Source: Amphiscolops sp. MND2022
Lineage: Eukaryota
Assembly (NCBI GenBank): GCA_964187785.1
Contig: OZ076419.1
Location: forward strand, 44,640,001 to 44,704,000
Length of the DNA stretch: 64,000 bases
Direction of reading: 5' to 3'
Position numbers and translations under genes: made by a program. The notes beneath the pieces were generated by a model, which was given only the letters and a program-made list of their open reading frames with translations, did not search any database and was not told the origin of the DNA. Positions 1 to 42,614 of the stretch are shown here, in pieces (position 1 is the stretch's first letter; every line of letters begins with the position of its first letter).

Positions 1-50
1 TACAAATCAGTCAACTATTAGGCTGTTCAGGATTAGGTTAACCCATAATG

Positions 51-2653
51 TCATGCTGTCTTCAATACCTGTTTCGCTTCCTCTTCGCGGTAACGAAGGT
101 CAATGCATCTGTGCACTCGCATTAGAGCCTGAGTGACAATGCAACGCTCTGCTGCTTTAAGGAGAAGAATTGCCAACATTTCCATGAGGTTTTTAAATTT
201 AAAACGGTCTGGCAAGGCATCCTCCTCTGCAATTGCCTTGCAAATTTCGTCAGAATGGCCCTCTGCTAGGAAGTTGGTACCAATGGCAACTGTATCCGAT
301 CGCGTCAAGACAAAATGCAGAAATTGTGCAGGCATTGCAAAAATGTCTCCTGGTCGCAAAGTGACTCTCAGACATCCTCCTTCGAGGTGACGCTGGCATG
401 CAAAGAACGAGTGGCTAAACGAAAAACCTCGATTTCAACAAGCCATTGTAAATATTAATAACGTGGTGCGTTTCAAGCTTCTATATAGATAAAATTTGTT
501 TGTTTTGTGCATTACAGTGCATTGACAAACTTAATTTTTACAGACACATGTTTGTGCGTGTAACCACTTACAACTGAAATAACTGAAACACTAGAATAAA
601 GTATTCATTGAAAGTGAAATGGGAGGTTCTAAATACATCTGCTTATTCAAAAAATTGACGTGTACACATGCAGGGGGCTTCAAGGGTAAGTTATTTTGTC
701 TTCGATTTTTTGTGTTTTCTGTGTAAAAAAATTTTTGACCGTTTTTGTCGTACGTCATAGAGAAACAACTGAACATCATTAACATTAGAACTTTTTAGTT
801 TAAAAATCATTAATTTGTTCGATTTTTTGTGAGAAAAGGAAAAAAAACAACTCACGTTTCATCGGTTTGTTGTTGGAACCAGTCGTCAAAAAGTTTCAGG
901 TTCTTCTCTGTGGGGGCGATCAGAAAGAAAATTTTTTCGCCTGTCAAGACGGTATATAGAACCGAGGTGGCACTAAAATCTTGGTGCCAAAAAGTTTGGC
1001 ATCCATCCTGTGATAGCAACAGATAATAGCTGGTCCCACTGGCAAAAGGTTCTGTTCGTGACATGTTAATACTTGCATCAAGAAAATGGGCCATTGAAGT
1101 TCGTTTGACAATGTCCGGAACCTTGTACAGTTTCTGGAAAAATAAAATGAGGTTCCTCAAGATGAAAAAGTAACATTAGTGGTACTTCTAAATGTGTAAT
1201 TTGATGTATTGTTTCTTTTGTTTACCTTCGGTTTCATTTGAATATCGATAACATTGAGGGGGTAGTATTCACTCAAACGATCGTCCTTCAGAAGATCTGA
1301 CTTCACCTCTGTATAATTCAGGTTTCGTGTCTAAAATAAATACACGTGGAATTTATACGAACTGTAAAAAGCAACCTGAAAAAATATGTGAATTCAAATC
1401 TTTCTTCAGGTTGCTCTTCACAGTTCGCAAAACACTTACCATATAAACTAGTAGATTTTGCAAAGTGTTTAGTAAGTGTTTTGCGAACTGTGAAGAGCAA
1501 CTTGAAGAAAGATTACGATACTTTAGCCGCATCGAACTAGCAAGATCTTGTTAGATCAATAATTAGCAATTAACAACGCGTTATTTATTCAAATACTCAT
1601 TACTTTTCGATACTCATGAGAAAAATTCTAAATTTGATACAAAAGATTTGCCAGTCACATTTGGTGAAATATTACTTACCTGACCAATCTTTGCTGATTT
1701 GACGTTGATTTCAAGATCCTTGTCCAGCAGATTTTCCTCTGTTAAAAGCATTTCGACAAATTGCTTGAACTCAGATGAATCTGTGTTGGATTGGTGCTGT
1801 GGGTTTGATAGACGAGGCAGTTTGAGTCCGTCACAGTGATTGGTTCCATCGCGCCAAACAATTGGGACACTGTGTCTAATGAGGGCATTGAATTTGGTAA
1901 CATGGTTGCTGACATTTCCATGCCACATGGCAACAGGGAAGTTGCTCTCCAATTGTACGTTGGTGCAAAAGTCGAAAAATGCGGTTGTTCCAAAAACATC
2001 AGGGGGCATGTCTGTGTATTGGGTTGACAAACAATACGAATCGGCTGATGGAGAAAGACGTGAGGAGGAACTCGGCGAATCAAAAGCAGTGTCCACTTTA
2101 CTCTTGCATTGAGGGTGCTTTAGAAGATGTGTCTTCAAATCATAGGAAAACACATAGCTTTTCCCGCAGCCATAGCAGATGTTGGGACTTCGTTTTACGC
2201 CTCTCGCTGCCTCTGTAACATGGAAAGTTTTTAATCAAAATATAGTACAGTTTTTCGACGTGGAATTTGATATTATAGAGATGACACAAATAACTTATTT
2301 TGAAGATAGTTATTGTCTTTTATTTCAGTTTTTTGCAGTATAGTTTTGTATTTCATGGTTCATGGAGATGATATATAGAGGTACTCACTATAGTTGTACA
2401 TTGTGATAGGAATTCCAGCACGTTTGCGAGCAGACTGTCGTTGGCAGTATGCTGTCGCCCAGTGACTTTTCAACAGTTTCTTGCCCATTAATAATTGCCC
2501 ACACCGTGGGCACGTTCGTTCCTGCAATTTCCACTCTTCAAGTGGCATGCGGTGGCATGCACTTGACTGGTGACGTTTTATATTTGAGCTTTTATTGGAT
2601 TTGTAGTCACATCGGCCTTGACCACATGCAATCATTTCTTGTCTGCAGCTCAT
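51..2653 (-). CDS. C2H2/C2HC zinc-finger + JmjC (KDM2/KDM7-like) protein, copy 1; 3' exon(s) probably outside the window
   Basis: Exons 2653-2389, 2212-1680, 1306-1226, 1133-856, 414-69 join in frame through GT..AG introns; the 1306 acceptor needs the distal AG of CAGAG. JmjC motifs YLLLSQDGCQTFWHQDFSATSVLY..GEKIFFLIAPTEKNL and PGDIFAMPAQFLHFVLTRSDTVAIGTNFL. Fingers CGQGRC..H, CPRC..H, CYGC..H..H. Confidence 0.8.
1397..1514. repeat. 43-bp inverted repeat (1 mismatch, 32-bp spacer) in a JmjC-gene intron; also at 24453-24570
   Basis: 1397-1439 is the reverse complement of 1472-1514. Confidence 0.9.
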
Positions 2654-2702
2654 GACAACTAAAAAGGATCATTGTTAGCGTTACCTTTTCAAAAATGATC
2701 AT

Positions 2703-3163
2703 GATAAGGTCATAGGGACCTCTTCGTCAAAATTATGTGGTCACATGGACCTTGTAAAAAATATGCGGTCATAGGGACCGTGGCAAAATTATGTGGTCAT
2801 AGGGACCTCTTGTAAAAATTATGTGGTCATAGGGACCTTGGCAAAAATAATGTGGTCATAGGGACCTCTTCGTCAAAATTATGCGGTCATAGGGACCTTG
2901 TCGTCAAATTATGTGGTCATAGGGACCTTGGCAAAGTCATGTGGTCATAGGGACCTCTTCGGCAAAACTACGTGGTCATAAGGACCTTGTCGTCAAATTA
3001 TGTGGTCATGGGGACCGTGGCAAAAATAATGTGGTCATAGGGACCTCTTCGGCAAAACTACGTGGTCATAAGGACCTTGTCAACAAATTAGGCAGTATAC
3101 AAAAATAGTTCAGTGATGGTCATTGCGACCTTGTCAAATTTATGTGGTCATAGGGACCTTGTT
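2703..3163. repeat. Minisatellite of ~27-30-bp units with core ATGTGGTCATAGGGACC (~15 units); also ~25759-26219
   Basis: Read directly; short variable tails such as tcttcgtcaaaatt and ttggcaaaaata. Confidence 0.9.
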
Positions 3164-6100
3164 ACAATGATATACAAAAGAGTTTCGTTTTCTATTTTCC
3201 TGATTTCCCTCTTCTTCGTTAATCCTCGTCTTCATTGTCTGTCTCTTAACCGCATTCTTGTATTTCCGCATGGCTGTGTGATATGTGATCAAATTAGCAG
3301 AGGCAATAGTTGGATGTGATGATTGGCGCTGTAACTGGGGGGCAACTGATTGGTATCGTATCTTCCTGAAGCTGGACTTGGCGGACATATCTACTTGGAT
3401 GATATACTCTTTTGGATCCACTAGTGACTTTTTTTCTGAACATTTGAAGATAAATTCTGCGTTGATGTAGATCCAATTTCCAAGTGTTGTATGATAGAAC
3501 GCCTTGGTCGATGATATATCTTTGATCACTTGGTTGCAGGTGAAGGAATCAATGGATCGACGATTAGGTAATACACAGTAATGATGGCTCAAAAAACTCA
3601 GCTTACTTCTGTTGACAAAGTCGGTATTATTGAGAACAGTGCCACCATTTTCTGTGATTGTTTTTTCGATACTGGCCTGAGTTTGCCTTATGTTACCATA
3701 TGTCCCGAGAACAATAAAAGTCATACATCTAAAAATTTCGGCGGTTCTATGGAAGTCAAGAACGGGCTCTATGATAGGTTCGCGGCAAATTTCGAGATAC
3801 GATTTAACATCATCTTCATTTGAAAGTCGATATCGACGAAGTAAATCGGCCTTTGAGGAGCAGAAGTCAACAGCACGCAGGAAGGAGAACTGAATGTCGA
3901 GGAAATTTGAGGACATGTTCCATGCGTCATTTCCTCCATCTCTCATAGTCTTTGAGTTATAATCCTTGCTGGCAGTATGGTGACTTTTTTCAGTGCCTTC
4001 TGTCATGTAATGAAATGGGGACAAGATCTCACCTTTTTCGTAAATTCTGAGCAGCATATCGATTTTCAGTTTGTATGGTGTTAGACCGCGATCTCCAAAC
4101 AAACACAATGTGCACTGATAATATGTTTCATAAAGGTTTTTGCACTTCTGGAGGTCAGTGATCTCTCGTTGCCGAAGCAATTCAAGTAGTTGAAATAAAG
4201 ATTGAAATTGGAGATCAGCTAACTTTCTGACTGAGATTCCAATACCTTTTGTGAACTGTGTTTCCAATCCGCCAACTAGTGATATGAGAACATTGTAGGG
4301 CGTGTTTGGTTGTGTTTGGTCTGATTTATATACATGTGGAGTTTGAAAAGAAAAAACTCCTTCGAAGAGTGGATTATCAACCCGCCCAAAGTCTCTGGTC
4401 CTTGTACAGTCAGAAATAATGACCTCCGCATCTCCAAAGCTCAAAGACACAGCTTTACAGAGCTTGTCGACTATTTCGAATTTGAATCTTGGGGGCTTGA
4501 CATTCCGTTCTGTTATATTACACTCAAGTCTTCCTATTGCTGTGTGATCTTTTGATGATACCAGTGAATCAACGTGTAGTTTGAGATCATTTTCAACTGA
4601 GCGAACAATCATATGAAGGACATCTGGACATGTATTAAACGTGGACTTCAGGAAAAGAAGAGACTCGCTGGGAAGTTGCTCAGAGATATCGAATTTCAAT
4701 TCTGTTCGTCGGCCGGTGGCACAATCTATTGTAGATGGGAGAATCACACCCTTCGATTCAAGGTCTTTCGTATAGGTACTGTCTTTTTTCGCCTTCTGTC
4801 TGGAACCTGTAGTGTTGGAAACAGCTATTGGATCAGGCAAATAAAGGCACATTTTGGAGTGACATGATGCATCACTGCTGACTCCCTTCAACATTCGTAA
4901 CTGGAACGGCGAATCGCCCGAACAACTCAGAAAAGCCCCCTCATCATGCAGGGCTTTTGTCTCGTTGTACAACCATCCGTGTCTACCAAGCGTCTCTGAC
5001 ATAGTGAGGTTGTATTCCAAATTGATTCGCACATCCTTGCCCTATTCAAAATACATTGCATAAGCATGGGTAAGAACATACAAACATAATAAAATTTAAT
5101 ACAGTAACAAAATTTAAAAATTACTCAAGAAGGTTCGTAAAACATTTCCTTTGTATTAGAAGATTGCTCAAGCCAGTTTGTAAAACATTTTATTTGTGAT
5201 AGAAGATTGCATAGAAGATTGCTCAAGACAGTTCGTAAAAAATTTTCTTTGTTTTAGACGAGTGCTCAAAACAGTTCGCAAAGAATGATCTTTTATTTAA
5301 AGACTGCTCAAGACAGTTCGTGAAAACACAATCCTTCTATAAAAGAATACTCCAACTATTTCGTGAAAACGTAACTTACATCAAACACTGCGAATGTGAA
5401 GACATGTGTTGAAGACTGTTCAGATTCTATTCCACTATCTAGGATACGGAACGCCATTCTAACGACATCGCGGTTTCCTCGAGACATTGCATCTCCGTTT
5501 ATATCAACTCTCACACCTGAAAGGGTGGTCTTTTTATAGAGATTGCACGCAACAAACTTTACGAATTTGACAAGATTGACTCGGAAACCAGTTGGGGTTC
5601 GCGATGGATTGAGTTTTGATCGGAAATCTTTATGCAATCTCGAGTTGACAGTCTCCAGTTCAAGTCTCGATGGGAGGATTGATGCTTTCATAAATGGACA
5701 TTTAGTGAGCTGACGTAGTTTGACTATAAGATCTTTGGGTTTGCTCAAACTAAGAAGACATTGGATGGAAATTTGGATGTCTTCTCTGTCATTGCCAAAT
5801 AAATTAATTAGTAACAAATGTAAAAGCATGTTAACAATAGGATTTTTTCGTTTTGACACTGTTTTCTGGTTAACCAAAAATTCATTCAAGGTCGTGCTGA
5901 ATTTTTCAAGAACTTCTGCGGAATCTGAAAGCAGCTTGAAGCAATTGGTCCAAAACTCTCCAGTATTCTCGAAAGTGTCCGGACCTAATACATGTTTCAG
6001 TTGTCGATACGATACATTTGTAATATTGTTGGGTAACAACTTTGGATCAAGAATTGACGAAGCATGTTGGAGTGAGTGATTTGTAGTCGTATCATTAGTT

Positions 6101-6856
6101 TGGAAGGTGGGTGAACTCAATGTATTTGTTGCAGAAGGTTTGAAACTGATCTGGTTCATCGGTCGGGTAACGTGAAGCTGGGGTGACTCCCTAATTGATG
6201 AGGTATCAATTGTCGAAAAAGAGGTACAATTTTGATTTGAAGGTATAGGAAAAGAAGGATAAAACTGTCGTAAAAAGGTTTCTCTTTCAGTCGTCCAAGG
6301 TAACAGCGATGGAGGGGCTGATATCATTAACATGTCAAAAATGTCTTCTCGTAAAAGTGCACATCTTTCTATTTTAACACCATGGGGTTTGTACTCGTCC
6401 TCAATGTTTACACTTGTACCTGTAACAAAATACACAACGTCAATGATAAAATTCAATATATTCAAAAGCAAATAACCAAAACAAAAAGCTTAGAAACCAT
6501 GGATCATCAATATCAATATACTGAAGATGTCTAATGATTCATTACGATACATGAGCCGCAAAAGTGAATTTTTATCATCAAGTGTAGTATGTTTTCAGTG
6601 TAAAATAGTCTCCAACCGTATTTTAGTCAAGGAGTGTAACGTGTATCAGCTATTTTATTGCGTATTTCAGTCGATGTAAGTTACCTGCATATTGTTTGAT
6701 AAGAAATGTTCTGATTTTTCGTCGATCATTTGCGTTCAAACATCCATTCTTTTCCAGTGGGAAAATCGCCGGGAATAGATCGTTCAAGAACAAAAGCTTC
6801 ACGTACTTCGTGTCGTCAGAAACGACCATAGGTTTTTGGAGTTGACTTGGTGACAT
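3140..6856 (-). CDS. RAG1/Transib-type DDE transposase with C-terminal BRCT domain (~1037 aa), copy 1, intact
   Basis: Exons 6856-6685, 6419-5380, 5041-3140 join in frame (3114 nt). Putative catalytic D in VRVDINGDAM, D in CSGDSPF, E in MTEGTEKSHH (cf. RAG1 SEGNES). PDVLHMIVR and LTPY motifs present. BRCT-like FIVLGTYG..IEKTITENGGTV..HYCVL..WIYINAEFIFKCSEKKSLVDPKEY. Confidence 0.75.
6540..6672 (+). repeat. 133-bp copy of the element terminus (CATTACGATACATGAGCCGC...), inside transposase intron 1; also 29592-29724
   Basis: Exact reverse complement of 21258-21390. Confidence 0.9.
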
Positions 6857-7350
6857 TTCAAACTAAAACAAAAGGGGAATGTCAGCTAAATTAAAGGGAG
6901 ATCACTGATGTCATTTTCGAAGTTTTCTTTTTTCTTTATGATTCGAAGTTTTCGTTTTCGAAGTATTCATTTTATGATAAGATGATGTATACATAAAACA
7001 TAATTCATAGTAATATAGATAGTATAATCATATTATATAACATTGAAATATATATAAAATCATAGTTCTAAGAGTTTGAAAAGTTTGCAGACTTTGGTGG
7101 TTGAGAGGGTTACAGAGGTTGAAGGCAGAAGGGTAATGTTCAAATAATAAATCGGCCAAAATAAAAGAAAGGTCACTGACATAATAAGAAGAAGGACCTG
7201 GTGTCGGTTTCGAAATGAATATATGATGGTGTGTACATAAAACATGATTCATAGTAATATAGATAGTATATATCATAGTAAATATCATAGAAATATACAT
7301 AATATCATAGTTCAATGAGTTTTAAGAAAAGTTTGCAGAGGTAAGAAGCA

Positions 7351-10340
7351 TTACGATACAGAAGTTGAAGGCTGGGAGGTTGTTACAGAGGCAGGCACAG
7401 AGGCCGAATTTTGGGTTGTCACAGAGGTTGTGGGCTGGGAGGTTGTTACAGAGACAGGCAGAGAGGTCGAAGGTTGGGAGGGTCCCACAGAGGGTGCAGG
7501 TCTATGAAGGAGTGGCTGTTGAAATTCTGTTCGACATTTTGGATCGTTATAATCAAAGCAAAGTTCCTCGAGTGCATCGATTCGCCGTTTAGCAATGAAA
7601 AGAATGACATCTTTTCCGTTAAGAACCAATCTCCGTGCTCTCACGTTACACTGGGCATGATTGGATGGTCTATAATTAAGTAGACGCCCAAAGGTTCTTC
7701 GTCCGGGATGGCAATCACATGTTTCTAAGGTGGCATCAAAAACTATGTCCCCACAGTCCAGAATGTACTGTGTGTTCTCGCGTCTAGAGAGGACTCTCTG
7801 GGATATGATAACATCAGTGTGATAATCACATAAGATTTCTGATTCGTTGACCTTAGTCGTTGTGATAACTCCTCTTCCAAAAGTGCCGTTGGTGAAAGCG
7901 ATCCGCTCTTGGACTTGAAGGAAGGGCCAATCTTGGTCAGCAAGGAATTGAGAAACCTTTGAAATGTTACAAACTGTTAAAGTGGATTTACAGAAAAACA
8001 TGCCCATGCCTCTGTGTGGAAGTGCTTCACTGGGGTCTTCTACGGGTGTGTTACGCGTTGACCTTCTGGTTTCACTGGTTGATGCAGGCTTCCAAGAGGC
8101 TGAGACTTTGTCAACAATTCGTGCAACATCGTGCCACCCGCGGTTGCGTGTAAACTTTGCAATGTCGTCTTTAGATGGCTGGGTTGAACCAGTAAAAAAG
8201 TTCAATGCTTTCTCTACACGGAGATTGACGAGTTTGTACCTCATATGGTCGTTAATCTTTTCACCAAGTGTTTTGGCTGATTTCGCATCCATTTTTGTGT
8301 TTCGAATGATTGTTTTACTGCATTCTACGGGTGTCAGAACGACGGAATCTACACTGGTTGGCATTTCGAAGAACTTCTTAACCTGAAATTGTGTAAAATG
8401 AGCAAATAAAAAAGAAATTGCTATCTACGGGTCACAAAAATTATGGTAAAGTTGCCAAATTTGCCAACCAGTGCCCTTGACATCGTAAAAATTGCTCTCG
8501 ACAGGTCGAAAAAAGCCCTATATTAATCCTTTTGACATATCGTAGAAATATTACTTACAGCATTGATGGTGGGAGATATGTTCCCTGTATTTGAATAGAA
8601 GATTTGCCTCTTTGAGTTCGGTGACATTTGCATCATATCGTTGTGAGATAAACGTTTTCTTTTCGAGTGTTGAGGTTCGACATTTTCGTCGTTTTCTGGT
8701 GAAATTGCATTGGCGGGGGAAATGAGGACTTCTTCAGTGGCGAGCAACGGTCGGGAGGAGATCGAAGCACCTAGTTTATCAATGGGAGCATTAGTTGATC
8801 GTCTTTTGGGTTTTGTGTGCGCGGCAGACATTTTAGTGTTGAAATTTTCACAGACTCGTGCGACATTGATCTGCTTGTTTCCATTCGAATTGTAAAAGAA
8901 AAGTTGGGTCATTTCTTGGACATTGGGGTCTGATATAACGGTGACTGGGAAACTTTCTTTTGTAAGCAATTTGAAACTATTGGTCCACTTTGGTCGGATA
9001 TGTTTGAAATAAAAAAGAAGTACTTTATATTCAAACTTATTAAATTTCAGAGCAGTCCGATACTTGTACTTGTTGCCATCGGAGACACTGACGTATTTGA
9101 AACTGTTACCGTGGTCGACCATGTTCACGAAATCATATACAGTGAACCGCTTCAAAAGTCGGGATGGGTAGCTATTGATGTAACACCACATTATTACGAT
9201 ACACTGGAAGATTAGGAGGCAGTCTTCTTTATGAGGTGTTGTCTCAAAATTGGTCACAAAATCAATATGGGAGCGACTGTCTGACCAATTCTGCATCATC
9301 GCTTCCCGCTCGTTGTCATGTGGAGTACCCATGTCAACATGTGGCGGAAAATGTTGCGTGGGTTGAGGAAAGAACGGACTGACTTCCATTGGGACTGGGT
9401 GATTGCCGGGGTTACAGTTACTCGTAACAGGTCCCTGTCTTGATGGAGGGAAAAGCATAGTTCTGATAGGTGGTTCTGATGGTATGGCGCGGTTCACATG
9501 ATTGTTCTGGTTTGTTCGTACCGGGGTGGAGGCTACAGACGGTTGAAACAATACAATTTGTTCCCCATTTACATCAGGAGGTGGGGTCTGTGCTGGTGCT
9601 GTACTTTGGCTTTGCAGGGTGGGTTGAGAATATTGAGTCACGAAATGTCCTGAAAAAAATCAATCGTCAATTTTGTACCGAAAATGATGATTCTCCTCAC
9701 ATGGTCAGACTTCATTACGATACATGAGTCGCAAAAGTGAATTTTTATCATCAAGTGTAATATGTTTTCATTGTGAAATAGTTCGTTTCACCAAAAGTTT
9801 CACCAAAATATTTCACCAAAAGTTTCTTTGTTTTCATAAAAATTTGCCAAGAAAGGTGTGAACTTCTTTCAAAAAAGTTAGGATGAAAATACAACATGGG
9901 TGTTTAGAAAAACATTCACCTGATTGTTGAGAAGCTCTTTGGGGGTATGACTGCTGGTGATGGTGATCAGCAGCGGAGGATACTGAACTCGAAGAGGCAA
10001 ATTCATATGGATCGAACGCAGACAGAACATGATATGTTTGGCAATTTCTAGCATGTTGCATATGATTCGTCGAAGAGGAGACATCATGATCATCATGATT
10101 ATCATGATCGTCATGATGTTGCTGATGCGCCTTCAGTTGTTGATTTATAATATTTTGGAGTTGAATGTGATTCGAATTAGACGAAGAATCAGAGGTTGAC
10201 ATTGTGAAAGACATATCATTGGTGGGAGCAGAAGTAGATGACGCAAATGCAGAGTTCGTCATTTGAAAGGTTGATGGTGGCAAAGTTTGCTGGGGGTGAG
10301 TGAGTTGTTGAAGGTGATGATTTGGAGCAGTGTTTGACAA
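7351..10340 (-). CDS. Q/H-rich + degenerate tyrosine-recombinase-like + SETD8/PR-Set7-like SET domain + S/T-rich tail (up to ~847 aa; start unresolved), copy 1
   Basis: Exons 10340-9920, 9649-8559, 8382-7351 join in frame (phase 1, phase 0). SET motifs FGRGVITT, CDYH, FDAT, GRLLNY, EELCFDY. YR-like segment IMWCYINSYPSRLLKRFTVYDF..VSVSD..EYKVLLFYFKHIRP..FFYN. Confidence 0.75.
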
Positions 10341-10548
10341 TGTAAAAGATGTTTGAATATATACACAAGGATTGAATTTCGCGTTGAGTCAAGCAGAGTT
10401 TGGAAATTCAGAAAATCTGATTTGAAAACGAGCAACAATTGAAAATGAGCAGCAAGCAAACTAACAAGAGGTTGGTAATTAGGATTGTTTATAAGTAAGT
10501 TGAGATGGCTAATTTGGTTCAAGTGAAAAAATGGGAATTGAATAATTA

Positions 10549-10625
10549 GGACTCAGAACAATAACAGACTCAAATCAAGCTGAAAAGTTTTCACCTTGAT
10601 TTGAGTCTGTTATTATTCGGAGTCC
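10549..10625. promoter_or_regulatory. Long hairpin-forming inverted repeat in the head-to-head intergenic region (candidate bidirectional promoter); also ~33602-33678
   Basis: 31-bp arms GGACTCAGAACAATAACAGACTCAAATCAAG and its complement, 2 mismatches; a third partial copy at ~10660-10697. The promoter role is inference. Confidence 0.45.
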
Positions 10626-10872
10626 GAATGAATACTAGTAAGTTGCTAATACTTATTAGGACTCAAAATGTTAGCAGTCTCAAATCAAGCTGAAAATGAG
10701 AATTTGTTCCCAAGTTCAATAGATTATTTGTTCTCACCGATGCAACATTGGCGAAAGTGTTAAGCCTCAAATCGAGTAATAAAATTTTCGCCACTAATGA
10801 AGCATTCAAAGAACCTATAAAAAATCAAATATACAATCTATTCCAGTTGTCAACAAGTTTTCAAGTTGAATA

Positions 10873-14442: not shown

Positions 14443-14605
14443 CTGGTACATAATTTATGTTTGACAATTTTTCAATTCAATTTGTGTTCCGATTTTTTTC
14501 TTTCATGATCAAAGATTCTAAATTTGTTAAACTTACAGTAAGATATGTTCAGGAACCGTCCTATTGGACAGCGTGCTGTCGATCGTCACTGCAACTGTAG
14601 AGCTA

Positions 14606-16112: not shown

Positions 16113-16496
16113 TACCAACAGGGGTGTGCATGCAATAATCTATCGGAAGATCAATAAATTATTGCAAAAAATAATTTATTAGAAAGCTTTTCACTATGAA
16201 TAATTTATTGGCAGGAAATAATTAATAAAATAATTTATTGCATCATGCAATAAATGAAACAATAAATGGGACATTGAATACACCTCGGTTCACATGTATT
16301 TGTTATGTAATATATACCATAAGATTAATATATACCGAAAGATTATGCCCACAGCCAAGTATATTTAGTGCCCACAGCGAAAATCAATGTCGCCCTATCA
16401 TCTAGAATGTGTTCTGTCTTTGAAGACCAATAAATAGTATTGGCATGCATCAATATGTGTTCAATTATGATGATTCAATATTTATAAATTATTGTA

Positions 16497-19592: not shown

Positions 19593-19804
19593 GTTACCAA
19601 ATAGCCGGCTTGGCTAATTTGATTTGAATGATATAATACGGGTGAAAGTTGGCAATTAATTAAGAATGAAAATTGAATTGAATAGGAAATTGGCAGTAAT
19701 GAATTATGAGAAATCTCAATTGGCAAACGAAGAAATTGAAATTTTGTAAATCCGTTTACGAACCTTGTCGGGACTGAACGAAATTTTCACCGAATGTCAG
19801 GACT

Positions 19805-21390: not shown

Positions 21391-21391
21391 T

Positions 21392-29908: not shown

Positions 29909-30402
29909 TTCAAACTAAAACAAAAGGGGAATGTCAGCTAAATTAAAGGGAGATAACTGATGTCATTTTCGAAGTTTTCTTTTTTCTTTATGATTCGAAG
30001 TTTTCGTTTTCGAAGTATTCATTTTATGATAAGATGATGTATACATAAAACATAATTCATAGTAATATAGATAGTATAATCATATTATATAACATAGAAA
30101 TATATATAAAATCATAGTTCTAAGAGTTTGAAAAGTTTGCAGACTTTGGTGGTTGAGAGGGTTACAGAGGTTGAAGGCAGAAGGGTAATGTTCAAATAAT
30201 AAATCGGCCAAAATAAAAGAAAGGTCACTGACATAATAAGAAGAAGGACCTGGTGTCGGTTTCGAAATGAATATATGATGGTGTGTACATAAAACATGAT
30301 TCATAGTAATATAGATAGTATATATCATAGTAAATATCATAGAAATATACATAATATCATAGTTCAATGAGTTTTAAGAAAAGTTTGCAGAGGTAAGAAG
30401 CA

Positions 30403-33393: not shown

Positions 33394-33925
33394 TGTAAAA
33401 GATGTTTGAATATATACACAAGGATTGAATTTCGCGTTGAGTCAAGCAGAGTTTGGAAATTCAGAAAATCTGATTTGAAAACGAGCAACAATTGAAAATG
33501 AGCAGCAAGCAAACTAACAAGAGGTTGGTAATTAGGATTGTTTATAAGTAAGTTGAGATGGCTAATTTGGTTCAAGTGAAAAAATGGGAATTGAATAATT
33601 AGGACTCAGAACAATAACAGACTCAAATCAAGCTGAAAAGTTTTCACCTTGATTTGAGTCTGTTATTATTCGGAGTCCGAATGAATACTAGTAAGTTGCT
33701 AATACTTATTAGGACTCAAAATGTTAGCAGTCTCAAATCAAGCTGAAAATGAGAATTTGTTCCCAAGTTCAATAGATTATTTGTTCTCACCGATGCAACA
33801 TTGGCGAAAGTGTTAAGCCTCAAATCGAGTAATAAAATTTTCGCCACTAATGAAGCATTCAAAGAACCTATAAAAAATCAAATATACAATCTATTCCAGT
33901 TGTCAACAAGTTTTCAAGTTGAATA

Positions 33926-36900
33926 ATGCAATTTTCCAAAGTTTTTCAATGCGGAAAACCATTACAATGCTTTGAGGAAGAATGTGGTCTTTGGCGATCT
34001 GCGTTTGTAAAAGAGTTCACCGGTACACATAAGGTAAGTTAATTTCTTTACAAACACTGTAAAAACTTGTAAATAGTTTTACAAACTGCCTTGAGCAATT
34101 TTAATAGCCGTGAATATAAAAATGTCTCAAGACAGTTTGTAAAAAGAGCATTCTTTGTTTACGTTTTTGACAGTGATACTTTGAAAAACTGGTCAGAACA
34201 GTTCGTGAAAAACATACAAAAGAATATAGAATAAGATTGTATAGTATAGGAATACAAAAGAAGAGAAATATATGAAAGAAAATAGTATAAAATTTTGTAT
34301 TATACTCTTTTATAAATTCCTAATCTTTTGTTCTTAACTTAGATAAACTCGTTTAAAAATTCACTTTTGCGGCTCATGTATCGTAATGAAATATAATGAG
34401 TAATAGAATTAGGGGGATTCCCAAATGGCCTTTCCTCAATGTTGCTACTCGTCGGAAGGGAGCGAAGCGCCCAAGTCATACAACAAATATAAGAATCTCT
34501 TCAGATAAAGACCTGAAAATAAACGCTGAAATGGAGTTTTTCGACGCGATGAATAGGTAACTTTGATTTCGACTCAATGAATAGCCTCCGTAGAATTATA
34601 AACTATCTGCCTATTTTTTTTGTATATCCTCAAAAATATCTAAAATATTAGGAATGTTGTATATACTTCAATTACTCAGTTCAATATGTATCAAAGTAAA
34701 ACTTCAGCTTTGGCTTTGCGACTGCTAGATGTTTTACGTTCGTAGAATTTCCGCACAGCAGAAAATGAAAGTTCGATCCCATACAGCAGAATATTTGTTT
34801 ATGCTGCTCGGATTGGCTGGAAATTGAAAATGAATTGAAATCAGTTAGTTGAAAACGCGTGACGGATTGTGTAGGAATTACATATAACGTTTTATTAGCC
34901 TAATATTAGCTACTCTATTACAGTCTACTCTAATCTGTATACTCAGTTAATGAGTATCTGTATTAGCTGAGCTGTAACAGCACTAAAAGCTAGTAATTCT
35001 TTTGACTGACAGTCATTGTATTGGATTGAATTATGTCGACCATAATTTTACGGGACCAAATTGGGACCAACGCAAACGATGTCGACACAATGATATTCGA
35101 ACCTTGTGACTTAATTGGGGGGAAGGGGGCGAAATGCACACATCGTCCATTTATTTCCCTGAACTCTATATGGGAATAAAGAATTTTCATTTTCGGTATG
35201 AAAATAAAATATTTTATGATCATTCTTTCAAGAAATTGTTTAAAATCTTTTTTGTTAAATAAAGCCCCCCCCCCACAATATGCCTTGAAATTTTAGATCC
35301 CTACAACTATCATCACGATACAGGAGCCGCAAAAGTGAATTTTTATCATCAAATAAACAGGAGAAAGTCATCATTTTTTTGAGTGCCTGCTGGAATTTCA
35401 TTATTTTTAGGGGTTTCCAGTTTTTTTTGAAAATTGGTAACATGCGTGTTCAATAAATGATTATGGGTAAACACTTCTACTCATTCTATTATTGTATTTT
35501 ATTTATTATTCATTGAATCTTTTATTTCAACAAAAAATAAATTATTTGAACACTCAAATGAATAAACCAATTATATTTGGACCAGTTAGAATAAAAAACA
35601 ATTATTCTTGAGATAACTAAAACTAAGAACGTTTAATTTAACTTATCGTCAGCGCATTAAATTCCCACTCAATTTATATTATTCCAATCAACGCAATTTG
35701 TTGAGCGATGCAAAATGACTAATTTTGCACTGCTGAACAAAGTGTGTTGATTGAATACTTGTAACCAATAGGATTTCAGTACTTTATAATATAAAGTTCT
35801 GAAATCGTATTGGTAACAAAGATCAGTGGCATAAATGGTAGAACACGAGGCTGTCGAGCTCTAAGACTGGGTTCAATTCCCGGTGATGAACATTTTTTTC
35901 AAGGGTCATGTATCACAACGTGCCCTAAAATATTTTGAAAAATAAATTTCAGGCTGGGAAAAATAATGAATTGTAAGTTTTTCCCCATAAACAATTGTTT
36001 TTATTCTCAGCTAAAAACGGATATCAGCAAAAACTTAAATTGTTGAACTAAGTTCTGAACATCGTAAATAGACCAATATTTGTTGTTAGCCATCAAACAA
36101 GTGGTATAAACTAAGTGATAGATCTTATAAATGTTTTTACCCACAAACATTGATTGAATACGCCTAGTTATTTGCATCTGATTTTCAATTTTTTGATAAA
36201 TTGAAATTGTTAACTAAGTACACGACAGCATTTACCAAAAAAAGATTGTTTAGTTTACATTTGTCCTTTACAGGCGAACGTGAAATGGTTTAATTATACG
36301 AGTAGGCACGCTGCTGGTACCATAGAATGTCCGCCCCAATTCTATGATTTTCCTGAAAAATGGCCGATCCGGAATAACGAGCCAATGATGTTAGGATACA
36401 GTAGAAAGACAGAGTTAGTGCTGAGCCTAGAAGTCCTAGGATACATGAAGGACAAGCGTGTAAGGAACGATAAGATTTTTTACACCCGATCATTAGACAA
36501 AGATGGACTGCTAACGGGAGATATCAAAGAGGGCTATGTGATGAAAAACGACCCTTTCCTTAAAAAAATGCTGGTATCCCCAATTATGGTACCCATTGTG
36601 GAAGGCAAATTTCTCGACGAGCAGCTTAAAGGAATTGATGTCACCACGATCTCATACTTCCAGCTTCGACCTGAACATTGTGAAACGTCCAGGAGAGGAA
36701 AGCACAAGAGAGCAACAGAGCAGCCGGAGGGAGAACGAGATGAAAGCGAGGACAAAGATGATCGATTCAACATTAGAATTCAGGTCCCATCGAAGAAGAC
36801 AAAAGTTGTCAAGCAAAAGCCTGCTCTTATTGGCGGACCATCTGACCCATTTCTGAATAAGCCCAATGGTCGCGTGAATCTTGTCTGCATACCCATTAGT

Positions 36901-37494
36901 ACGGGTGTGGTCATGAAAGGTGACACCGTGTCACTAATGGGAACTGATTGGAAAGTGAACGATCTGTATTTCTTGGAGAATAAATTATTTCTGGAAGTCG
37001 AGAAACGAGACGATGCATTTTTTTAATCCACAGTCCCAATCAATTATATTAAAAAAGAATGTGTTTCCCCGGTCGAATTTCACCCAGCAATGCCCCTTTA
37101 TGAGGAACACTCATTGATTTATTGGGCCTACTCAAACTTACGGCATATATTGATGCATTCCTTCAACGGTGCGAGCAGAGTAAAGGACATCAGAAGAGAT
37201 ATTGCCCCATGTACTCCTGCGACACTGCACGCATTTGGCATTCGAGACGGCACGGTGACGTATAGTGTGAAATACGATGGCGCCTTATCCACTGCAAGTT
37301 GGGATACCATACTGGGGGACGAATGGGACAAGGTTGCGGAAGGGACAGCTGTTGTGATGTCCATAAAGTTCAAAGAAGATAGAAGCTGTACCCTCAACTT
37401 TAATAGGAATATATTTGTGCAAGCTACTCTCGTATCCAATGTAAACTTCAAAACAATGGAGAATTACAGAATGCATGTCAAGGAGCATTGTTAA
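33926..37494 (+). pseudogene. Orphan gene, copy 2, with premature stop
   Basis: AAA>TAA at 37024-37026; the same frame resumes downstream. Confidence 0.7.
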
Positions 37495-40400
37495 CTGGTA
37501 CATAATTTATGTTTGACAATTTTTCAATTCAATTTGTGTTCCGATTTTTTTCTTTCATGATCAAAGATTCTAAATTTGTTAAACTTACAGTAAGATATGT
37601 TCAGGAACCGTCCTATTGGACAGCGTGCTGTCGATCGTCACTGCAACTGTAGAGCTACCCTAGTCGAGCCTGCACGAACTTTTTGCATGTTGCATGAATG
37701 CATGCAGGGAAACTTTTTAAAAAACCTAGAAAATTCAAGGATCATGCAGGGGAAAATCTTGTAAAACTTTCCTGCATCTTTGAAAAATGATCAATTTTCA
37801 GATGAAAACTTTTAGAAAAAGACACTGCAGCCTTTGAATTTTTGAGCAAGAGTTCACTTGAAAACGATGACTTCGCTCGAAATCCTCTTCTGATAGAAAA
37901 CAAAAAAAAATAGAAAAATACACTAAATTTGATAAGTGAAATTCAAAACAACAAATTATAAAAATTATAAAAAAATTACAGTCTCAGTCTTACTTATAGT
38001 AGCTGAGGTTTTCGGGAACCATCTGACATCAAGAAACGGGACATCAAACTCGTAAAGAATCTGCAATAGTTGCAAGCAAGCTTCCACGACAGAAACGATT
38101 CCAGCGATATTGAGGCCGGCGTGAAAATATCGTCATTGAACAATTGTTGGGATCTACGTTCACTTTCTAAGAACTTTGAGTGTTTTTCGTTCCGAACGAG
38201 TCTCTGATTTTCTGCGAACCTTCAAATCATTCTTTCCTTTGATATGACAGCCACGAATGCTGCTTCTACATTGAATGGTTGTAAGTCCGATTTAATATAT
38301 TTATATGATTCATCTTTTGAAAGCTAAATGACAGCAAGAGGACAAAAGCATGATCGTTCTGGGCTAATTTGTTGCTCAGCTATGGGACTATGTATGGAAG
38401 TTATCACATCTGTTCCTTTATTCATTTGAATGCTCCAAGCTATTATCGTTCGTTGCAACTCGGGCTTGATGCTGCGACGACAACAATCTCTTGGCCTTTT
38501 CGACTTCTCGTCTCAATATTTCAAAATGATAAATGTTATTCGAAATTTTGAAAAAAAATTTCACGTCGAATGAAGAAAGTTTTGATTTTTTTGTTCCTTC
38601 TGAGAACTTTTTACTGAGAATAGCGTCAGTTCTTTTTTTTCCTTTCGATTCTCGATTTTAATAGGTAATAGGAAAGTCAAACTATGAAGTTTTAAACAGT
38701 CCAATGAAAATCGCTCATTTTCGACATTACGCTCTAAAGTAGTTCCATCAAGTTTTTCTCAGGATACCATGAAAACTTATAACTTTCTGCCCTAATGACT
38801 TGAAGTCGTGACAAATTTTCTATGACCTTATGTTTTTCAGGCGAAAAAAAATGAACCGCGCTGACGATTTTGAGACGAATTTCTTTGCTTCAGTGGCACA
38901 TTTAGATGAGTTCACATCAGACAAAAGTTTTGCGGGTTTTCGTCCTCTACAACTTTGATCATCATGATGCTGCTTACAAAACCCGCCAAATTGTGCATAA
39001 ACCTTGATTAAAACTAATAAGCTGATAATTAACTTAAATAATTATCAGCTCAACGGCGAAATTTTCGAGCATGAAAATAATTCAAAGAATCACCCAAAAC
39101 TTTATTAAAAGTATCAGGCAACCTATAAAAGCATGTAAAAAGTTCATGCACTGTGAACAAGGGTACCAACAGGGGTGTGCATGCAATAATCTATCGGAAG
39201 ATCAATAAATTATTGCAAAAAATAATTTATTAGAAAGCTTTTCACTATGAATAATTTATTGGCAGGAAATAATTAATAAAATAATTTATTGCATCATGCA
39301 ATAAATGGAACAATAAATGGGACATTGAATACACCTCGGTTCACATGTATTTGTTATGTAATATATACCATAAGATTAATATATACCGAAAGATTATGCC
39401 CACAGCCAAGTATATTTAGTGCCCACAGCGAAAATCAATGTCGCCCTATCATCTAGAATGTGTTCTGTCTTTGAAGACCAATAAATAGTATTGGCATGCA
39501 TCAATATGTGTTCAATTATGATGATTCAATATTTATAAATTATTGTAACATTACAATAATTTATTGTTTAAAACAAGTCTTATTATAATTTATTGTTTAA
39601 AACAAACAATCATTTATTGGTTAGTTTCAGCAATAAAATGACTTATTGTATCGTATCAATAAATATAAATGCAATATTGCGCACCCCTGGTTACCAAATA
39701 GCCGGCTTGGCTAATTTGATTTGAATGATATAATACGGGTGAAAGTTGGCAATTAATTAAGAATGAAAATTGAATTGAATAGGAAATTGGCAGTAATGAA
39801 TTATGAGAAATCTCAATTGGCAAACGAAGAAATTGAAATTTTGTAAATCCGTTTACGAACCTTGTCGGGACTGAACGAAATTTTCACCGAATGTCAGGAC
39901 TGCTGTGACGTCATAATTAAAATGATAACAAGAGACCAAATAACACAGCAACTGTGACGAATGTGCACGCTTGATTTCTTAGTTTGATTTCCATTTTACG
40001 GCCTGTAATGAGCTGTGACGTCATAGTTAAAATGATAACATAAGACCAAATAACACAGCAACTGTGACGAATGTGCATGCTTGATTTCTTAGTTTGATTT
40101 CCATTTTACGGCCTGTAATGAGCTGTGACGTCATAGTTAAAATGATAACATAAGACCAAATAACACAGCAACTGTGACGAATGTGCATGCTTGATTTCTT
40201 AGTTTGACTTCCATTTTACGGCCTGTAATGAGCTCGATACAGTATGGATACTATTTGCAGGCATAGAGCGGACATGAAGATTACGAAACTCTATCTCCAG
40301 CTCATCACAGTTTGTAAAATGACAGATTATCTTACCTTCAGCCCATGACAGTCCGTAAACTGAAAGATAAATAAATTTCATTAATAAACGCTAAACTAAA

Positions 40401-42614
40401 AAAATGCACGATAAAATGAAAGCTCTTATCTCTAGCTCATCACAGTCCGTAAACTGAAAGGGAACATGTCATCTATTTCCCCCCAGGTACACCTTGTTAG
40501 GAGTTCTCCCCAACACGAAAGCACATTTTCTTCTGGAATAAAAATACTTCACCAAGAAGAGAGTATTATATAAAAGTAAATACTTAGAGGATTGTCTCTA
40601 CTAATGTTTGGACACTTCAGGTTTAAAAATGCCATAATTGTTTGTTGATATTGTGCAAAATAGTAAAATTCCCGCTTGAACAAGATACAAAATTATAAAA
40701 AGGCCCCTATTTCACGCAAATTTTCTCCGTGACAAATCTAATGAGCCGTGCCTAATGATTATGTCGACAACAAGGGATCAGAAAAATCTATGGGAGTTCA
40801 CGCATCAAACATTGAAAATTCAGACTCAAAAATTGAAGATTATCCTCTTAGACCTTCAGAAATGAAAGATTTAGCACATCGTGATAAGCCTCTGTACGGA
40901 AATGAAATAGATTTAGACGCAACTATAGTATCAAATGATCACTCTGAGTCATGTATTTTAGGTCTAATGGTATACAATTAAGCTCATGGTATCAATCAAC
41001 TCTAGTGTAACTTTAGTGTAACTCAATCCACTTAAACAGCGTGAAACAGTGTAAAACAATCAAACTATAGTGTAAATCAATCAAGTTAAGCAGCGTAAAA
41101 CAATCAAAGTTGTTACTGAGTGAATTCAAATTTAAAGCGTCAGCAAGAAATTGTCTAGTATTAATGAATTAGTGTAAAGTAGTCAAACTTTGACTACTAT
41201 CCACTTTTTGAGGAGATTACTTTCTGAATTCCTCAAAAAGTGAATTCTAGTTAAAGTTTGACTGATTTACACTTGACACAATTTCTTGACTGGAATACAC
41301 TTTTTACGAATTACACTTAATGACTGAAATTCGTGAATCTGCGTTACACTGCTTGACTGAAATACGCAATATAATAGCTGATACACGTTACACTCCTTGA
41401 CTAAAATACGGTTGGAGACTATTTTACACTGAAAACATACTACACTTGATGATAAAAATTCACTTTTGCGGCTCATGTATCGTAATGAAGTTTATGAAAT
41501 CACGAGACCTTTACTGAACAACCGAAAAAATGTGTGGAAAGTTCAAGCAGTCCTCACAATTATATTCAACTTTTTTCACAAGTTTTTCTGTTAGGTCTCT
41601 TTTGTCACACCATTGTGAATGCCAGTGCAGTAGGTCCGAGGCGTTCTAGGGAATGCACGAGACACATGGTGGTACAAAATATACAAAACTCTATTTCAAC
41701 TAATTGGACGATGATAATCCAATAATCAAATAACTCAAATAACGAAAAAAGTCTAATTTTCAGGCGTTGCGATCAATATTTACGGACAATACGTTTGGAC
41801 CTTGATTACTTCTTACCCTGGTTGGAACTGCTTGAACTTTTTACAAGTTTTTGTAGGTTAACCTACAAAGCTAATTTTTCATGATTCTATAAATATCCCA
41901 AGGAAACGTCCAGGCAATAAAACTTCACTGATGCAATTTGATTCATCAAGCTGCCTATAAGATGCATCCTACAATTGGCGGCAAATATGAACCGCGAAGT
42001 TTTGCAGGTTTCATACAGACGCCGTTCTAATTTTGAAAGCAGCTGAGACCTTCATCAATTTTACCGCGGTTTCAATGCAAATAAATTTCAGTCACATTAT
42101 AAGTATCAAAGTAGCGTCATATTTAGCGTGCTATTCGTGACGGCTAACCGTGACGGTGTTTACGTAAGGTACTTACTTGAGAAACTTACCCGTGAAAACA
42201 AAGTGATCGCCGTGGTGAAGAAGTGGAAATGTTTTCAGTTTTAACTCAAATAGTGAAAGCTGCCTAGTAAACCTACAAAATGTTTCCATGCATAGTCCCT
42301 GAATTTTCCGTGTTTTATAAAAAATAGCCGGCATTTTATGAAGGTGCCTGTAAAATATCGCGGCAACTTCAACTAGGGTAGTTAGTGTGAAACCAATATC
42401 CGTCGGGAATAGGCTAACAAATCCAAAAGAGGAAGAAAATGATCTCAAAGCACTCAAGAAAAGAGGACATGACGTTCGAACAAGCCGAAAAAACAATAAT
42501 GCAAGGCATGAAACAAAAAAATCTGATATCATTTTTTTGTTTCAGAGGGTGAACCAAGGCAACATAAACCTCTGTAGACATTTGCAAGTATTTTGACCGG
42601 GGTGACGTCTCAAA

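Follow-up and report, generated by a model that had tools for sequence, protein, structure and literature searches.

A probable giant cut-and-paste transposon with a RAG1/Transib-like transposase and conserved SET and JmjC genes

Results

A repeated unit with four genes

The stretch of DNA analysed here (64,000 nucleotides in total, referred to as the window) was compared with itself by BLAST. Two blocks, 1-21390 and 23057-41487, showed an identity of about 99.6-99.7%, with 1-16497 matching 23057-39548 and 16497-21390 matching 36595-41487. The prediction that a unit of at least 20 kb is present twice was thus confirmed for the assembled sequence, and the length measured here is a minimum because the window start truncates the unit. 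The features of the two copies are as follows.

1..21390, minus strand: element copy 1; the window start cuts its JmjC side, its orphan-side terminus is at 21390, and its long frames are all open (self-BLAST, ORFs)
21592..41487, minus strand: element copy 2; its orphan-side terminus is at 41487 and its JmjC-side end is absent (self-BLAST, motif search)
21392..21591, no strand: assembly gap (run of N), beginning 2 nt past the copy 1 terminus
13543..19451, plus strand: internal tandem duplication of 2955 bp found only in copy 1, 13543-16497 being equal to 16497-19451 (self-BLAST)
51..2653, minus strand: zinc finger and JmjC (ZF-JmjC) gene of copy 1, with exons at about 2360-2653 (C2H2-like), 1614-2153, 852-1160 (HxD) and 51-359 (second His)
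23107-25709: ZF-JmjC gene, equivalent in copy 2
3140..6471, minus strand: transposase gene of copy 1, with exon 1 at 6471-5380, a GT-AG intron at 5379-5042 and exon 2 at 5041-3140
26196..29523, minus strand: transposase gene of copy 2, whose exon 1 is frameshifted near 28567
7351..9641, minus strand: gene of copy 1 with an N-terminal X domain and a SET domain (X-SET), the X ORF at 8523-9641 and the SET ORF at 7351-8364
30403-32693: X-SET gene, equivalent in copy 2
13228..14442, plus strand: orphan gene of copy 1, 404 aa
36280-37494: orphan gene, equivalent in copy 2, with a stop at 37024-37026

The ORF listing agreed with the expectation that the genes of copy 1 have open frames, and copy 2 was found to be broken in the transposase and orphan genes. 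The 2955-bp duplication in copy 1 yields a second orphan ORF, truncated at the 5' side, at 16500-17396.

The transposase gene

The transposase is about 1000 aa long, and the two exons of its gene are separated by a canonical GT-AG intron. Exon 1 contains the first putative catalytic Asp motif (VDINGD), and exon 2 contains SGD, D-x2-H, E-x2-E-x3-H, and a C-terminal BRCT-like region. When all the long ORFs were searched against Pfam at E values up to 10, no transposase family was matched, and only SET and weak BRCT, JmjC, and zinc-finger matches were obtained. Likewise, sequence and profile searches of the PDB with the transposase gave no RAG1/Transib match and only weak BRCT-like matches.

Relatives of the transposase were collected in 384 representative clusters by a profile search, and the window protein belongs to the same family as one of its members, P0021. 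The AlphaFold (AF2) model of P0021 had a pLDDT of 78, with a core above 90; the fold of the window protein is taken from this relative, which is 27% identical to it. With the P0021 model as the query, all 48 of the 48 Foldseek matches at E <1e-3 were RAG1, HzTransib, BbRAGL, or P-element transposase, and the TM-scores were moderate (0.4-0.55 relative to the target). The invariant acidic columns of the family, D370/D374, D454, and E744/E747 of P0021, correspond to D323/D327 of exon 1 and to D40 and E345/E348 of exon 2 in the window protein, and fall on beta1, the end of beta4, and a later helix of the P0021 model. These three invariant positions are assigned as a putative catalytic triad as in the CMCT clade, which comprises EnSpm/CACTA, Mirage, Chapaev, Transib, Plavaka, ESTA, Lanisha, and RAG1 and is characterised by 5'-CA..TG-3' termini and a target site duplication (TSD) of 2-5 bp (PMC12730594).

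As for the C(2)C and H(3-4)H motifs of this clan, neither a conserved C-x2-C nor H-x3/4-H before the E was seen in the family alignment. In their place, C-x3/4-D-x2-H (with a semi-conserved Cys) was found after the second D, and H-x2-E-x2-E-x3-H around the E; these altered Cys/His motifs may form a variant zinc site. Because the C(2)C/H(3-4)H pattern is missing, we file the element as CMCT-related without placing it in a named superfamily.

The original prediction had described the protein as a DDE transposase fused to BRCT. The first part was upheld by the RAG1/Transib-type fold of the relative P0021. The BRCT part corresponds to a weak BRCT_2 match of 22.4 bits, below the Pfam cut-off of 27.3, which turns up at the same position in many members of the family; in one of them the PF00533 cut-off is passed, and the P0021 model has a compact alpha/beta module in this region.

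The X-SET, ZF-JmjC, and orphan genes

In the X-SET gene, several GT-AG joins keep the frame open, and in a distant relative the X and SET parts lie together in one 419-aa ORF. The expected SET domain was recovered by Pfam with an E value of 2.4e-10, above the cut-off, and its best PDB matches were KMT5A/SETD8. The GRGV and EELCFDY motifs are present, and NY stands in place of the canonical NH, which the distant relative keeps.

The N-terminal domain had been called YR-like, and this assignment was not supported by Pfam, PDB, or word searches. The X domain gave no Pfam match at E values up to 10 and no PDB match with either a single sequence or a profile, and a word search with its core returned close homologues only, none of which was annotated. 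A tyrosine recombinase (Crypton-like YR, with R-H-R-Y or an integrase/DUF3504 match) was rejected, since no profile or PDB match was found and the conserved core of about 130 aa is without HxxR...Y.

The predicted ZF-JmjC gene was also recovered, with a C2H2-like exon (a weak zinc-finger match) and a JmjC match. JmjC exon a, which contains HQD, matched KDM7/PHF8/KDM2A with an E value of 2.5e-11, and exon b, which holds the second His, was colinear with residues 236-310 of KDM2A. The Pfam JmjC score of the whole gene was below the cut-off because the introns split the domain. By these alignments the product is predicted to have a JmjC domain of the KDM2/KDM7 group with the HxD...H iron ligands.

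The orphan gene showed no recognisable domain and no PDB match, and only close homologues were found. Its AlphaFold model had a pLDDT of 41.6 and was unusable. Sister families share the gene at 50-60% identity, and it is lineage-specific.

Number of copies in the window

Over 18.4 kb, copies 1 and 2 differ by 55 substitutions and 8 indels, a divergence of 0.3% with an equal rate for coding and non-coding DNA. This level suits alleles as well as young copies. Accordingly, the two copies could be a single locus assembled twice, with haplotypes on either side of the gap, and the duplicate would then be an artefact. The last bases of copy 1, up to 21390, are ...CATGTATCGTAATG; a single T separates them from the gap, and copy 2, insofar as it is visible in the window, begins at the first base after the gap. 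Such suffix-to-prefix geometry is typical of false duplications. However, the terminus is followed by T in copy 1 and by A in copy 2, and contig breaks right at the ends of multi-copy repeats are expected regardless. Indeed, an independent assembly breaks at nearly the same place: a public contig 97% identical to the unit starts at the base matching 21606 of the window, at most 15 nt from the right edge of the gap. Furthermore, in a sister family, which was found in the public assembly of a related genome with at least 24 copies that are 98-99% identical and about 29 kb each, two copies truly lie head to tail, nested, on a single long-read contig. We therefore consider a false duplication possible but rather unlikely. 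It touches only the copy number in the window and not the identity of the unit.

The sequence just to the right of the gap lies about 1.5 kb past copy 2's last conserved JmjC exon and shows no conservation of coding sequence. ORFs spanning the gap are runs of X only and no gene crosses it; hence, no reading frame relies on the gap.

Conservation and linkage of the four genes

In the sister family, the genes likewise follow the order orphan (-), X-SET, transposase, ZF-JmjC, with 35-70% amino acid identity. For every gene, pN between the families was 0.18-0.36 against a saturated pS of 0.7-0.9; dS between the families is saturated, so only pN/pS was used. These substitution patterns indicate that all four genes are under purifying selection. 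In two distant relatives from other samples, which are 22-25% identical, the SET gene adjoins the transposase, and an orphan-like ORF is present as well in one of the two. The conserved order and the purifying selection bear out the view that the four genes belong to the element.

Alternatively, the SET, JmjC, and orphan genes might be host genes captured passively and doing nothing for the element, in the manner of Pack-MULEs or of CACTA elements that capture genes. In favour of this, CACTA-type elements that are large and contain additional ORFs have been described (PMC6431247), the NY motif of the SET domain is non-canonical, and the roles of the three genes for the element are predicted here from sequence. 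Against this, the frames have stayed open and the order and orientation have been kept across families with saturated synonymous sites, pN being well below pS, and the pairing of transposase and SET recurs in the two distant relatives. Moreover, the pieces are whole multi-exon genes and not fragments. Passive capture is accordingly judged improbable, and we regard the three genes as conserved cargo.

Termini and mobility

The terminal and subterminal features of the unit in the window are as follows.

41355..41487, minus strand: terminal 133 bp of copy 2, ending ...GCGGCTCATGTATCGTAATG and, read from outside, starting 5'-CATTACGATACATG (self-BLAST)
21258-21390: terminal 133 bp of copy 1, with the same sequence as that of copy 2
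41190..41420, plus strand: five subterminal direct repeats of the TTGACT-N-ATAC type in the last 300 bp
6538..6672, plus strand: inverted copy of the terminal 135 bp, internal to the unit and lying between the SET and transposase genes
9711-9782, 11301-11337, 12257-12299: shorter internal terminus copies in copy 1
29590-29724, 32763-32834, 34354-34390, 35310-35352: internal terminus copies in copy 2

A CA-initial terminus with subterminal repeats had been anticipated and was observed, with five direct TTGACT motifs. The sequence at 6538-6672, which had been taken as the inverted-repeat partner of this terminus, proved to be an internal copy rather than the element's second end. The window shows a single end of the unit: the CATTACGATAC motif, with one mismatch allowed, was not found within 21592-24566, and the true left terminus is absent from the window. 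The 97%-identical public contig offers no sequence to the left of its match at 21606. This terminus adjoins three different flanks. BEL/Pao retroelements were also observed in flanks.

Both ends were seen in the sister family, whose terminal 14 bases are the same as those of the window unit and from which, rather than from the window copies, the TSD evidence comes. The sister copies have identical end points on both sides, CATTACGATACAC...GTGTATCGTAATG, with CATTACG...CGTAATG at both ends; on the JmjC side ten copies share one end base, on the orphan side seven do, and the flanks are unrelated in all of them. Sister elements insert into one another. On one contig, sister copy A is nested in copy B, and the TSDs are TA and GT (2 bp). 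The empty site for a sister insertion was seen in another copy, and comparison of the filled and the empty site gave a 2-bp TSD. In addition, two short ORFs of the element were found in 34 and 62 blocks of the sequence collection.

The predicted mobility of the unit is thus supported by the exact termini, the unrelated flanks, and the filled and empty pair with its 2-bp TSD in the sister family, together with the three flanks of the window terminus. The genes were not single-copy syntenic host orthologues, and they do occur together elsewhere. Membership in the RAG1/Transib/CACTA group, also proposed from the beginning, is supported by the fold search, the CA..TG termini, and the 2-bp TSD. It is highly probable that the unit is a transposon.

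The true mobile unit might be smaller, running from the internal inverted copy to the terminus (6540-21390 or 29592-41487) and lacking the transposase and JmjC genes, since the two 135-bp sequences are inverted repeats with 99-100% identity. When the flank sequences were read, however, no matching 2-bp duplication was found around a segment of the 6540-21390 type or any pair of internal terminus copies. In addition, the homology between the copies and to the 97%-identical contig continues unbroken across 6540, the ends of the sister elements lie far past the JmjC gene, and the internal terminus copy of the sister family is in direct and not inverted orientation. This alternative is very improbable. 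Sub-elements bounded by internal terminus copies were likewise rejected, as no pair has matching 2-bp flanks.

A host gene cluster spread by segmental duplication deserves hardly any credence: the window alone shows just two adjacent copies and a single visible end, but the dozens of sister copies with base-exact ends, inverted termini, unrelated flanks, a 2-bp TSD, and an empty site, the three different flanks at the window terminus, and the RAG1/Transib-like transposase fold all speak against it. For the sister family, this explanation is already refuted.

Discussion

These findings suggest that the unit is probably an autonomous cut-and-paste transposon of more than 20 kb with terminal inverted repeats (TIRs), whose DDE transposase is of the RAG1/Transib/CACTA-like (CMCT) clan and whose SET, JmjC, and orphan genes are conserved cargo. 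The lineage appears to be so far undescribed; in the literature, we found no description of this gene combination, of BRCT-bearing RAG1-like transposases, or of giant transposons with histone enzymes.

In the proposed mechanism, the transposase would bind the TTGACT-type subterminal repeats and the CA..TG ends would be cut via a RAG/Transib-like route, while the BRCT module may bring in host end-joining repair. The SET and JmjC proteins would act on nucleosomes at the element, the donor site, or the target site, and might either strip away repressive marks as an anti-silencing measure or deposit marks under which the break is more readily repaired. That the element edits chromatin is something we infer from its predicted gene products. 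Whether the SET and JmjC enzymes are active and serve transposition or anti-silencing is close to evenly balanced, with slightly more doubt than confidence. Somewhat more tentatively, the elements may represent a widespread undescribed RAG1/Transib-like lineage, possibly at the superfamily level, that uses its own histone writer and eraser and a BRCT-bearing transposase to set the chromatin of the element or of the break.

Transposons are usually viewed as targets of chromatin silencing. If the above reading is true, this element would instead manipulate histone marks for its own ends, with methyltransferase-like and demethylase-like genes that have long been kept while it is still multiplying. 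The transposase family would add a deep branch, with a BRCT module, to the small group of RAG1-like transposases, which bears on the link to double-strand-break repair. The near-identical intact copies point to an active cut-and-paste system with very large cargo that is open to direct testing.

Comparison with known systems

The element resembles the CMCT clade in that RAG1/Transib are its best structural matches, its termini are CA..TG, and its 2-bp TSD falls inside the range of 2-5 bp; the subterminal repeats are shared with CACTA elements. In contrast, it has no sequence-level match to Pfam transposase families or to RAG1/Transib in the PDB, its C(2)C/H(3-4)H motifs are altered, it has a C-terminal BRCT-like module, and it is 20-29 kb long with three conserved extra genes. 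The overall transposase fold is shared with Transib, ProtoRAG, and RAG1-RAG2, whereas the TSD is 2 bp instead of 5 bp and the terminus is CATTACG instead of the CACAGTG-like heptamer of Transib and RAG-like elements. RAGL elements have a RAG2-like partner. The oppositely oriented orphan sits where such a partner protein might be sought, although a likeness to RAG2 has no support. Mirage elements have a 2-bp TSD (Repbase class), with which the TSD of the element agrees; this comparison is by TSD alone.

SETMAR/Metnase likewise combines a SET domain and a DDE transposase, and a link to double-strand-break repair has reportedly been proposed for it. SETMAR is a host fusion gene with a domesticated mariner transposase, whereas the SET gene described here is separate and is carried by an apparently active transposon from a different superfamily.

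In Chondrus crispus, En/Spm (CACTA) elements enlarged to 16-20 kb and holding 4-5 ORFs have been reported (PMC6431247). Compared by description, they are similar in size and also have several ORFs; the passage that describes them names no chromatin enzymes. Fungal TIR transposons (KDZ, Plavaka, ESTA, and others), some of which are in the CMCT clan, carry a TET/JBP dioxygenase as a stable gene (PMC12730594). The present element is likewise a TIR transposon with stable epigenetic-enzyme genes, but these are predicted to be histone-directed (SET and JmjC) and not DNA-directed, two opposing predicted activities occur together, and the host is probably an animal, given the BEL/Pao retroelements in the flanks. 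If the proposed roles are true, the element would be the histone counterpart of the fungal transposons that carry TET/JBP.

Genes of the unit

The ORFs of the four genes in copy 1, and the two defects found in copy 2, were located in the window as follows.

5356-6471, minus: transposase ORF, 371 aa
5379-5042, minus: canonical GT...AG transposase intron, joining the 371-aa and 630-aa ORFs
3140-5032, minus: transposase ORF, 630 aa
7351-8364: SET ORF, 337 aa
8523-9641: X-domain ORF, 372 aa, upstream of the SET ORF
2360-2653: JmjC gene ORF, C2H2-like
1614-2153: JmjC gene ORF
852-1160: JmjC gene ORF, containing HQD
51-359: JmjC gene ORF, second His present
13228-14442, plus: orphan ORF, 404 aa
near 28567: frameshift in exon 1 of the copy 2 transposase
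37024-37026: stop in the copy 2 orphan

The transposase splice junction, between ...FAVFD and GKDVRINLEYN, agrees with intronless relatives. A SET gene had been predicted; indeed, the 337-aa ORF matched Pfam SET (E 2.4e-10), and its PDB matches were KMT5A/SETD8 only (E 2e-6). The predicted ZF-JmjC gene was supported by the C2H2-like ORF and by the ORF at 852-1160, which matched KDM7/PHF8/KDM2A (E 2.5e-11); that at 51-359 was colinear with KDM2A residues 236-310. The orphan also kept its name: its homologues were all close ones, no match was obtained in PDB, and its structure model was unusable (pLDDT 41.6). The label "YR-like" given to the 372-aa ORF was unsupported, since its conserved core of about 130 aa had no match in Pfam (E up to 10), in PDB (alone and as a profile) or in a restricted homologue search. 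Several GT-AG joins preserve one frame through the 372-aa and 337-aa ORFs, and the X and SET parts lie in a single 419-aa ORF in one distant relative.

Two copies and the gap

As predicted, the unit is present twice as sequence; self-comparison of the window gave two colinear copies with 99.6% identity.

1-16497 = 23057-39548: copy match
16497-21390 = 36595-41487: copy match
13543-16497 = 16497-19451: internal tandem duplication of 2955 bp, copy 1 only

This duplication (13543-19451) gives a second, 5'-truncated orphan ORF at 16500-17396. Over 18.4 kb, 55 substitutions and 8 indels separate the copies, a divergence of 0.3% that is equal in coding and non-coding DNA. Copy 1, whose start is cut off by the window edge, has its last base at 21390 in ...CATGTATCGTAATG; a single T separates it from the only N run of the window (21392-21591). 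The end of copy 2, at 41487, has identical bases, after which comes AAGTTTATG... The segment 21592-23056, on the right side of the gap, lies downstream of the copy 2 JmjC gene, and no coding conservation was seen in it. Because the gap-crossing ORFs are runs of X, no reading frame depends on the gap.

The two copies might be a false haplotypic duplication of the assembly and not a tandem pair, a reading to which we give rather less than even weight. The contig end before the gap equals the contig start after it, a geometry that fits such an artefact and a real tandem pair equally well. The first base of ctg184588 (L002), a contig 97% identical to the unit, corresponds to window 21606, 15 nt past the gap. 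Breaks of two independent assemblies at nearly one place suggest hard-to-assemble or repeated sequence there. Just past the gap, a non-coding stretch of 74 bp (21964-22037) repeats part of the subterminal repeat region (92%), in the orientation of the right end.

Ends, dispersed copies and target sites

Outside the window, every paralogue of the 630-aa ORF (63-96% identical) lies on a long contig from a single public metagenome assembly, which evidently includes a related host genome. L002 is colinear with the unit over window 21606-41488; its homology ends exactly at the terminus, and its own flank, ACGAAAAAAA..., follows. As the flanks of copy 1, copy 2 and L002 differ, the window terminus has three different flanks.

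A sister family with 35-70% protein identity to the window unit has the same gene order and orientation (orphan(-), X-SET, transposase, ZF-JmjC), and three of its copies, on separate contigs, are 99.2-99.4% identical along 21.8 kb. Its 103-aa ORF from the JmjC-side part was present in 34 blocks of the collection, and its 58-aa ORF from the orphan side in 62. At 10/10 fetched JmjC-side loci, homology stopped at the identical base after ...CCGGCATGTGTATCGTAATG, followed by ten unrelated flanks; at seven orphan-side loci, unrelated flanks were followed by the start CATTACGATACACGTACCGG... These base-exact ends on both sides indicate that the sister element ends in inverted repeats, CATTACGATACAC...GTGTATCGTAATG. 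On one contig, a 29.4-kb sister copy is nested in another, 352 bp from the end of the outer copy. The nested copy has TA on either side, whereas an uninterrupted copy (...AATTCTAATTCAT...) has a single TA there; for the outer copy, the bases on either side are GT. The sister family thus makes a 2-bp TSD, as the comparison of filled and empty sites shows. Both copies of the nested pair (L027/L028/L017/L018; ctg185281, record 122930-181292) have the same orientation. Their layout suggests self-targeting or local hopping, and resembles the head-to-tail layout of the window.

A third family ends in ...ACATGTATCGTAATG at the transposase side, and the last 14 bases of the window unit are common to the ends of the sister and third families. 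At L005, a third-family locus, an exon resembling the zinc-finger exon of the JmjC gene is found beyond the orphan gene, on its other side and in opposite orientation (612-866), and no JmjC gene follows the transposase. By its appearance, this arrangement is a structural variant.

Internal terminus copies, repeats and neighbouring DNA

Copies of the terminal 135 bp were also found inside the unit.

6538-6672: inverted copy, between the SET and transposase genes
9711-9782: partial copy
11301-11337: partial copy
12257-12299: partial copy

The 97% relative has kept these copies, and the sister family has one internal copy in direct orientation. Matching 2-bp flanks were seen for no pair of them, so that small nested elements are not an obvious explanation. 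The copies may serve as alternative ends or as shared regulatory modules. Between the zinc-finger exon and the transposase gene end (2708-3159 and 25764-26218), about 15 units of 28-30 bp (GGTCATAGGGACC...) form a minisatellite; the transposase intron contains 4-5 copies of a 43-bp unit (28176-28384); and in the non-coding 4 kb that separates the orphan gene from the terminus, a 110-bp unit is repeated three times in tandem (19805-20137 and 39902-40234; units 97% alike). About 110 nt between the genes for X-SET and the orphan (33926-34036; about 10873-10983 in copy 1) form a block that is 71-78% conserved in all three sister families, with unalignable DNA around it. This block might represent a short exon or a regulatory element that the families share.

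BEL/Pao retroelement domains occur in the flanks of the window unit and of related loci, and for this reason the host, a eukaryote, is probably an animal. The right flank holds retroelement remains (46430-52713) with a Pao-type peptidase (48808-49416) and an aspartyl protease (50045-51607). Dispersed direct repeats at 61283-61529/63590-63833 (82% identical) and a second pair at 42575-42806/43964-44188 (76%) are unrelated to the element. Beside one sister-element copy, L022:1906-4043 is a Polinton/Maverick-like remnant with a double jelly-roll capsid domain and an rve integrase.

Fold of the transposase

Searching with a profile of the transposase family gave 384 representative clusters, in which a weak BRCT was the only Pfam domain; several have lengths of 1000-1300 aa and are intronless. 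One family member, P0021, was modelled with AlphaFold on a 40-sequence alignment (pLDDT 78, pTM 0.70, core > 90). When the model was compared with PDB, 48/48 matches with E < 1e-3 were RAG1, HzTransib, amphioxus RAG-like and Drosophila P-element transposase; the best E was 3.8e-6, with probability 1.0 and 600-750 columns aligned. The invariant residues were as follows.

D-x3-D: P0021 strand beta1; window exon 1 D323/D327
D: P0021 end of beta4; window exon 2 D40
D-x2-H: shortly past the beta4 D; window exon 2 D137/H140
E-x2-E-x3-H: later in P0021; window exon 2 E345/E348/H352

Judging from the model, these residues sit where a DDE enzyme needs them.

Conservation of the cargo genes

Comparison of the window unit with the two sister families gave saturated synonymous sites (pS 0.7-0.9) and non-synonymous differences of 0.18-0.36 in every element gene, the orphan and the unknown domain included. 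Two relatives from other samples have transposases with only 22-25% identity to the modelled one; in each, a SET gene adjoins the transposase in divergent orientation, and one of them has a 452-aa ORF with an orphan-like segment (hhalign probability 85%, E 6e-6). The low non-synonymous change in all genes despite saturated synonymous sites, the preserved gene order and orientation, and the recurrence of SET beside the transposase in distant relatives make passive capture of the extra genes unlikely, and show the pairing to be old and selected.

The original prediction of a mobile element agrees with the exact ends, unrelated flanks and 2-bp TSD of the sister copies and with the flanks of the window terminus; dispersed copies and TSDs were found in the sister family of the public assembly. 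Its four genes belong together, all co-occurring in the same order and orientation in that family. The assignment to the RAG1/Transib/CACTA group was upheld by the fold search, the CA..TG ends and the TSD. For the name "transposase-BRCT", the fold supports the first half, and the second corresponds to a weak Pfam match.

Proposed working of the element

Beyond the observed ends, TSD, copy number, fold and conserved cargo, we infer a mechanism in which the transposase would recognise the TTGACT-type subterminal repeats, five of which lie in the last 300 bp, and would cleave at the CA..TG ends by analogy with RAG1 and Transib, while the BRCT-like module would recruit repair factors. Members of the JmjC group concerned remove H3K9me1/2, H3K27me2, H3K36me2 or H4K20me1, and the predicted JmjC protein may keep repressive marks off element copies. 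For break repair or for tagging the element, a mark may be set by the KMT5A-like SET protein, although its SET domain has NY in place of NH, the canonical motif, which a distant relative has. A role as an accessory DNA-binding protein, comparable to TnpA of En/Spm, is conceivable for the orphan.

Comparison with known transposons

The "CMCT" clade comprises EnSpm/CACTA, Mirage, Chapaev, Transib, Plavaka, ESTA, Lanisha and RAG1; common traits are termini of the CA..TG type, TSDs of 2-5 bp, and two motifs, C(2)C and H(3-4)H (PMC12730594). The present family has the CA..TG termini, a TSD in this range and the clade-type fold, but lacks both Cys/His motifs in their canonical form; accordingly, we place the element as a lineage of its own in or beside the CMCT clan, outside the named superfamilies. 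No description of the family or of its gene combination was found in the searchable literature. The element is a CMCT/RAG1-like TIR transposon, and thus of a known general type; its unusual features are a size of 20-29 kb, the BRCT-like module and a conserved, predicted pair of histone writer and eraser.
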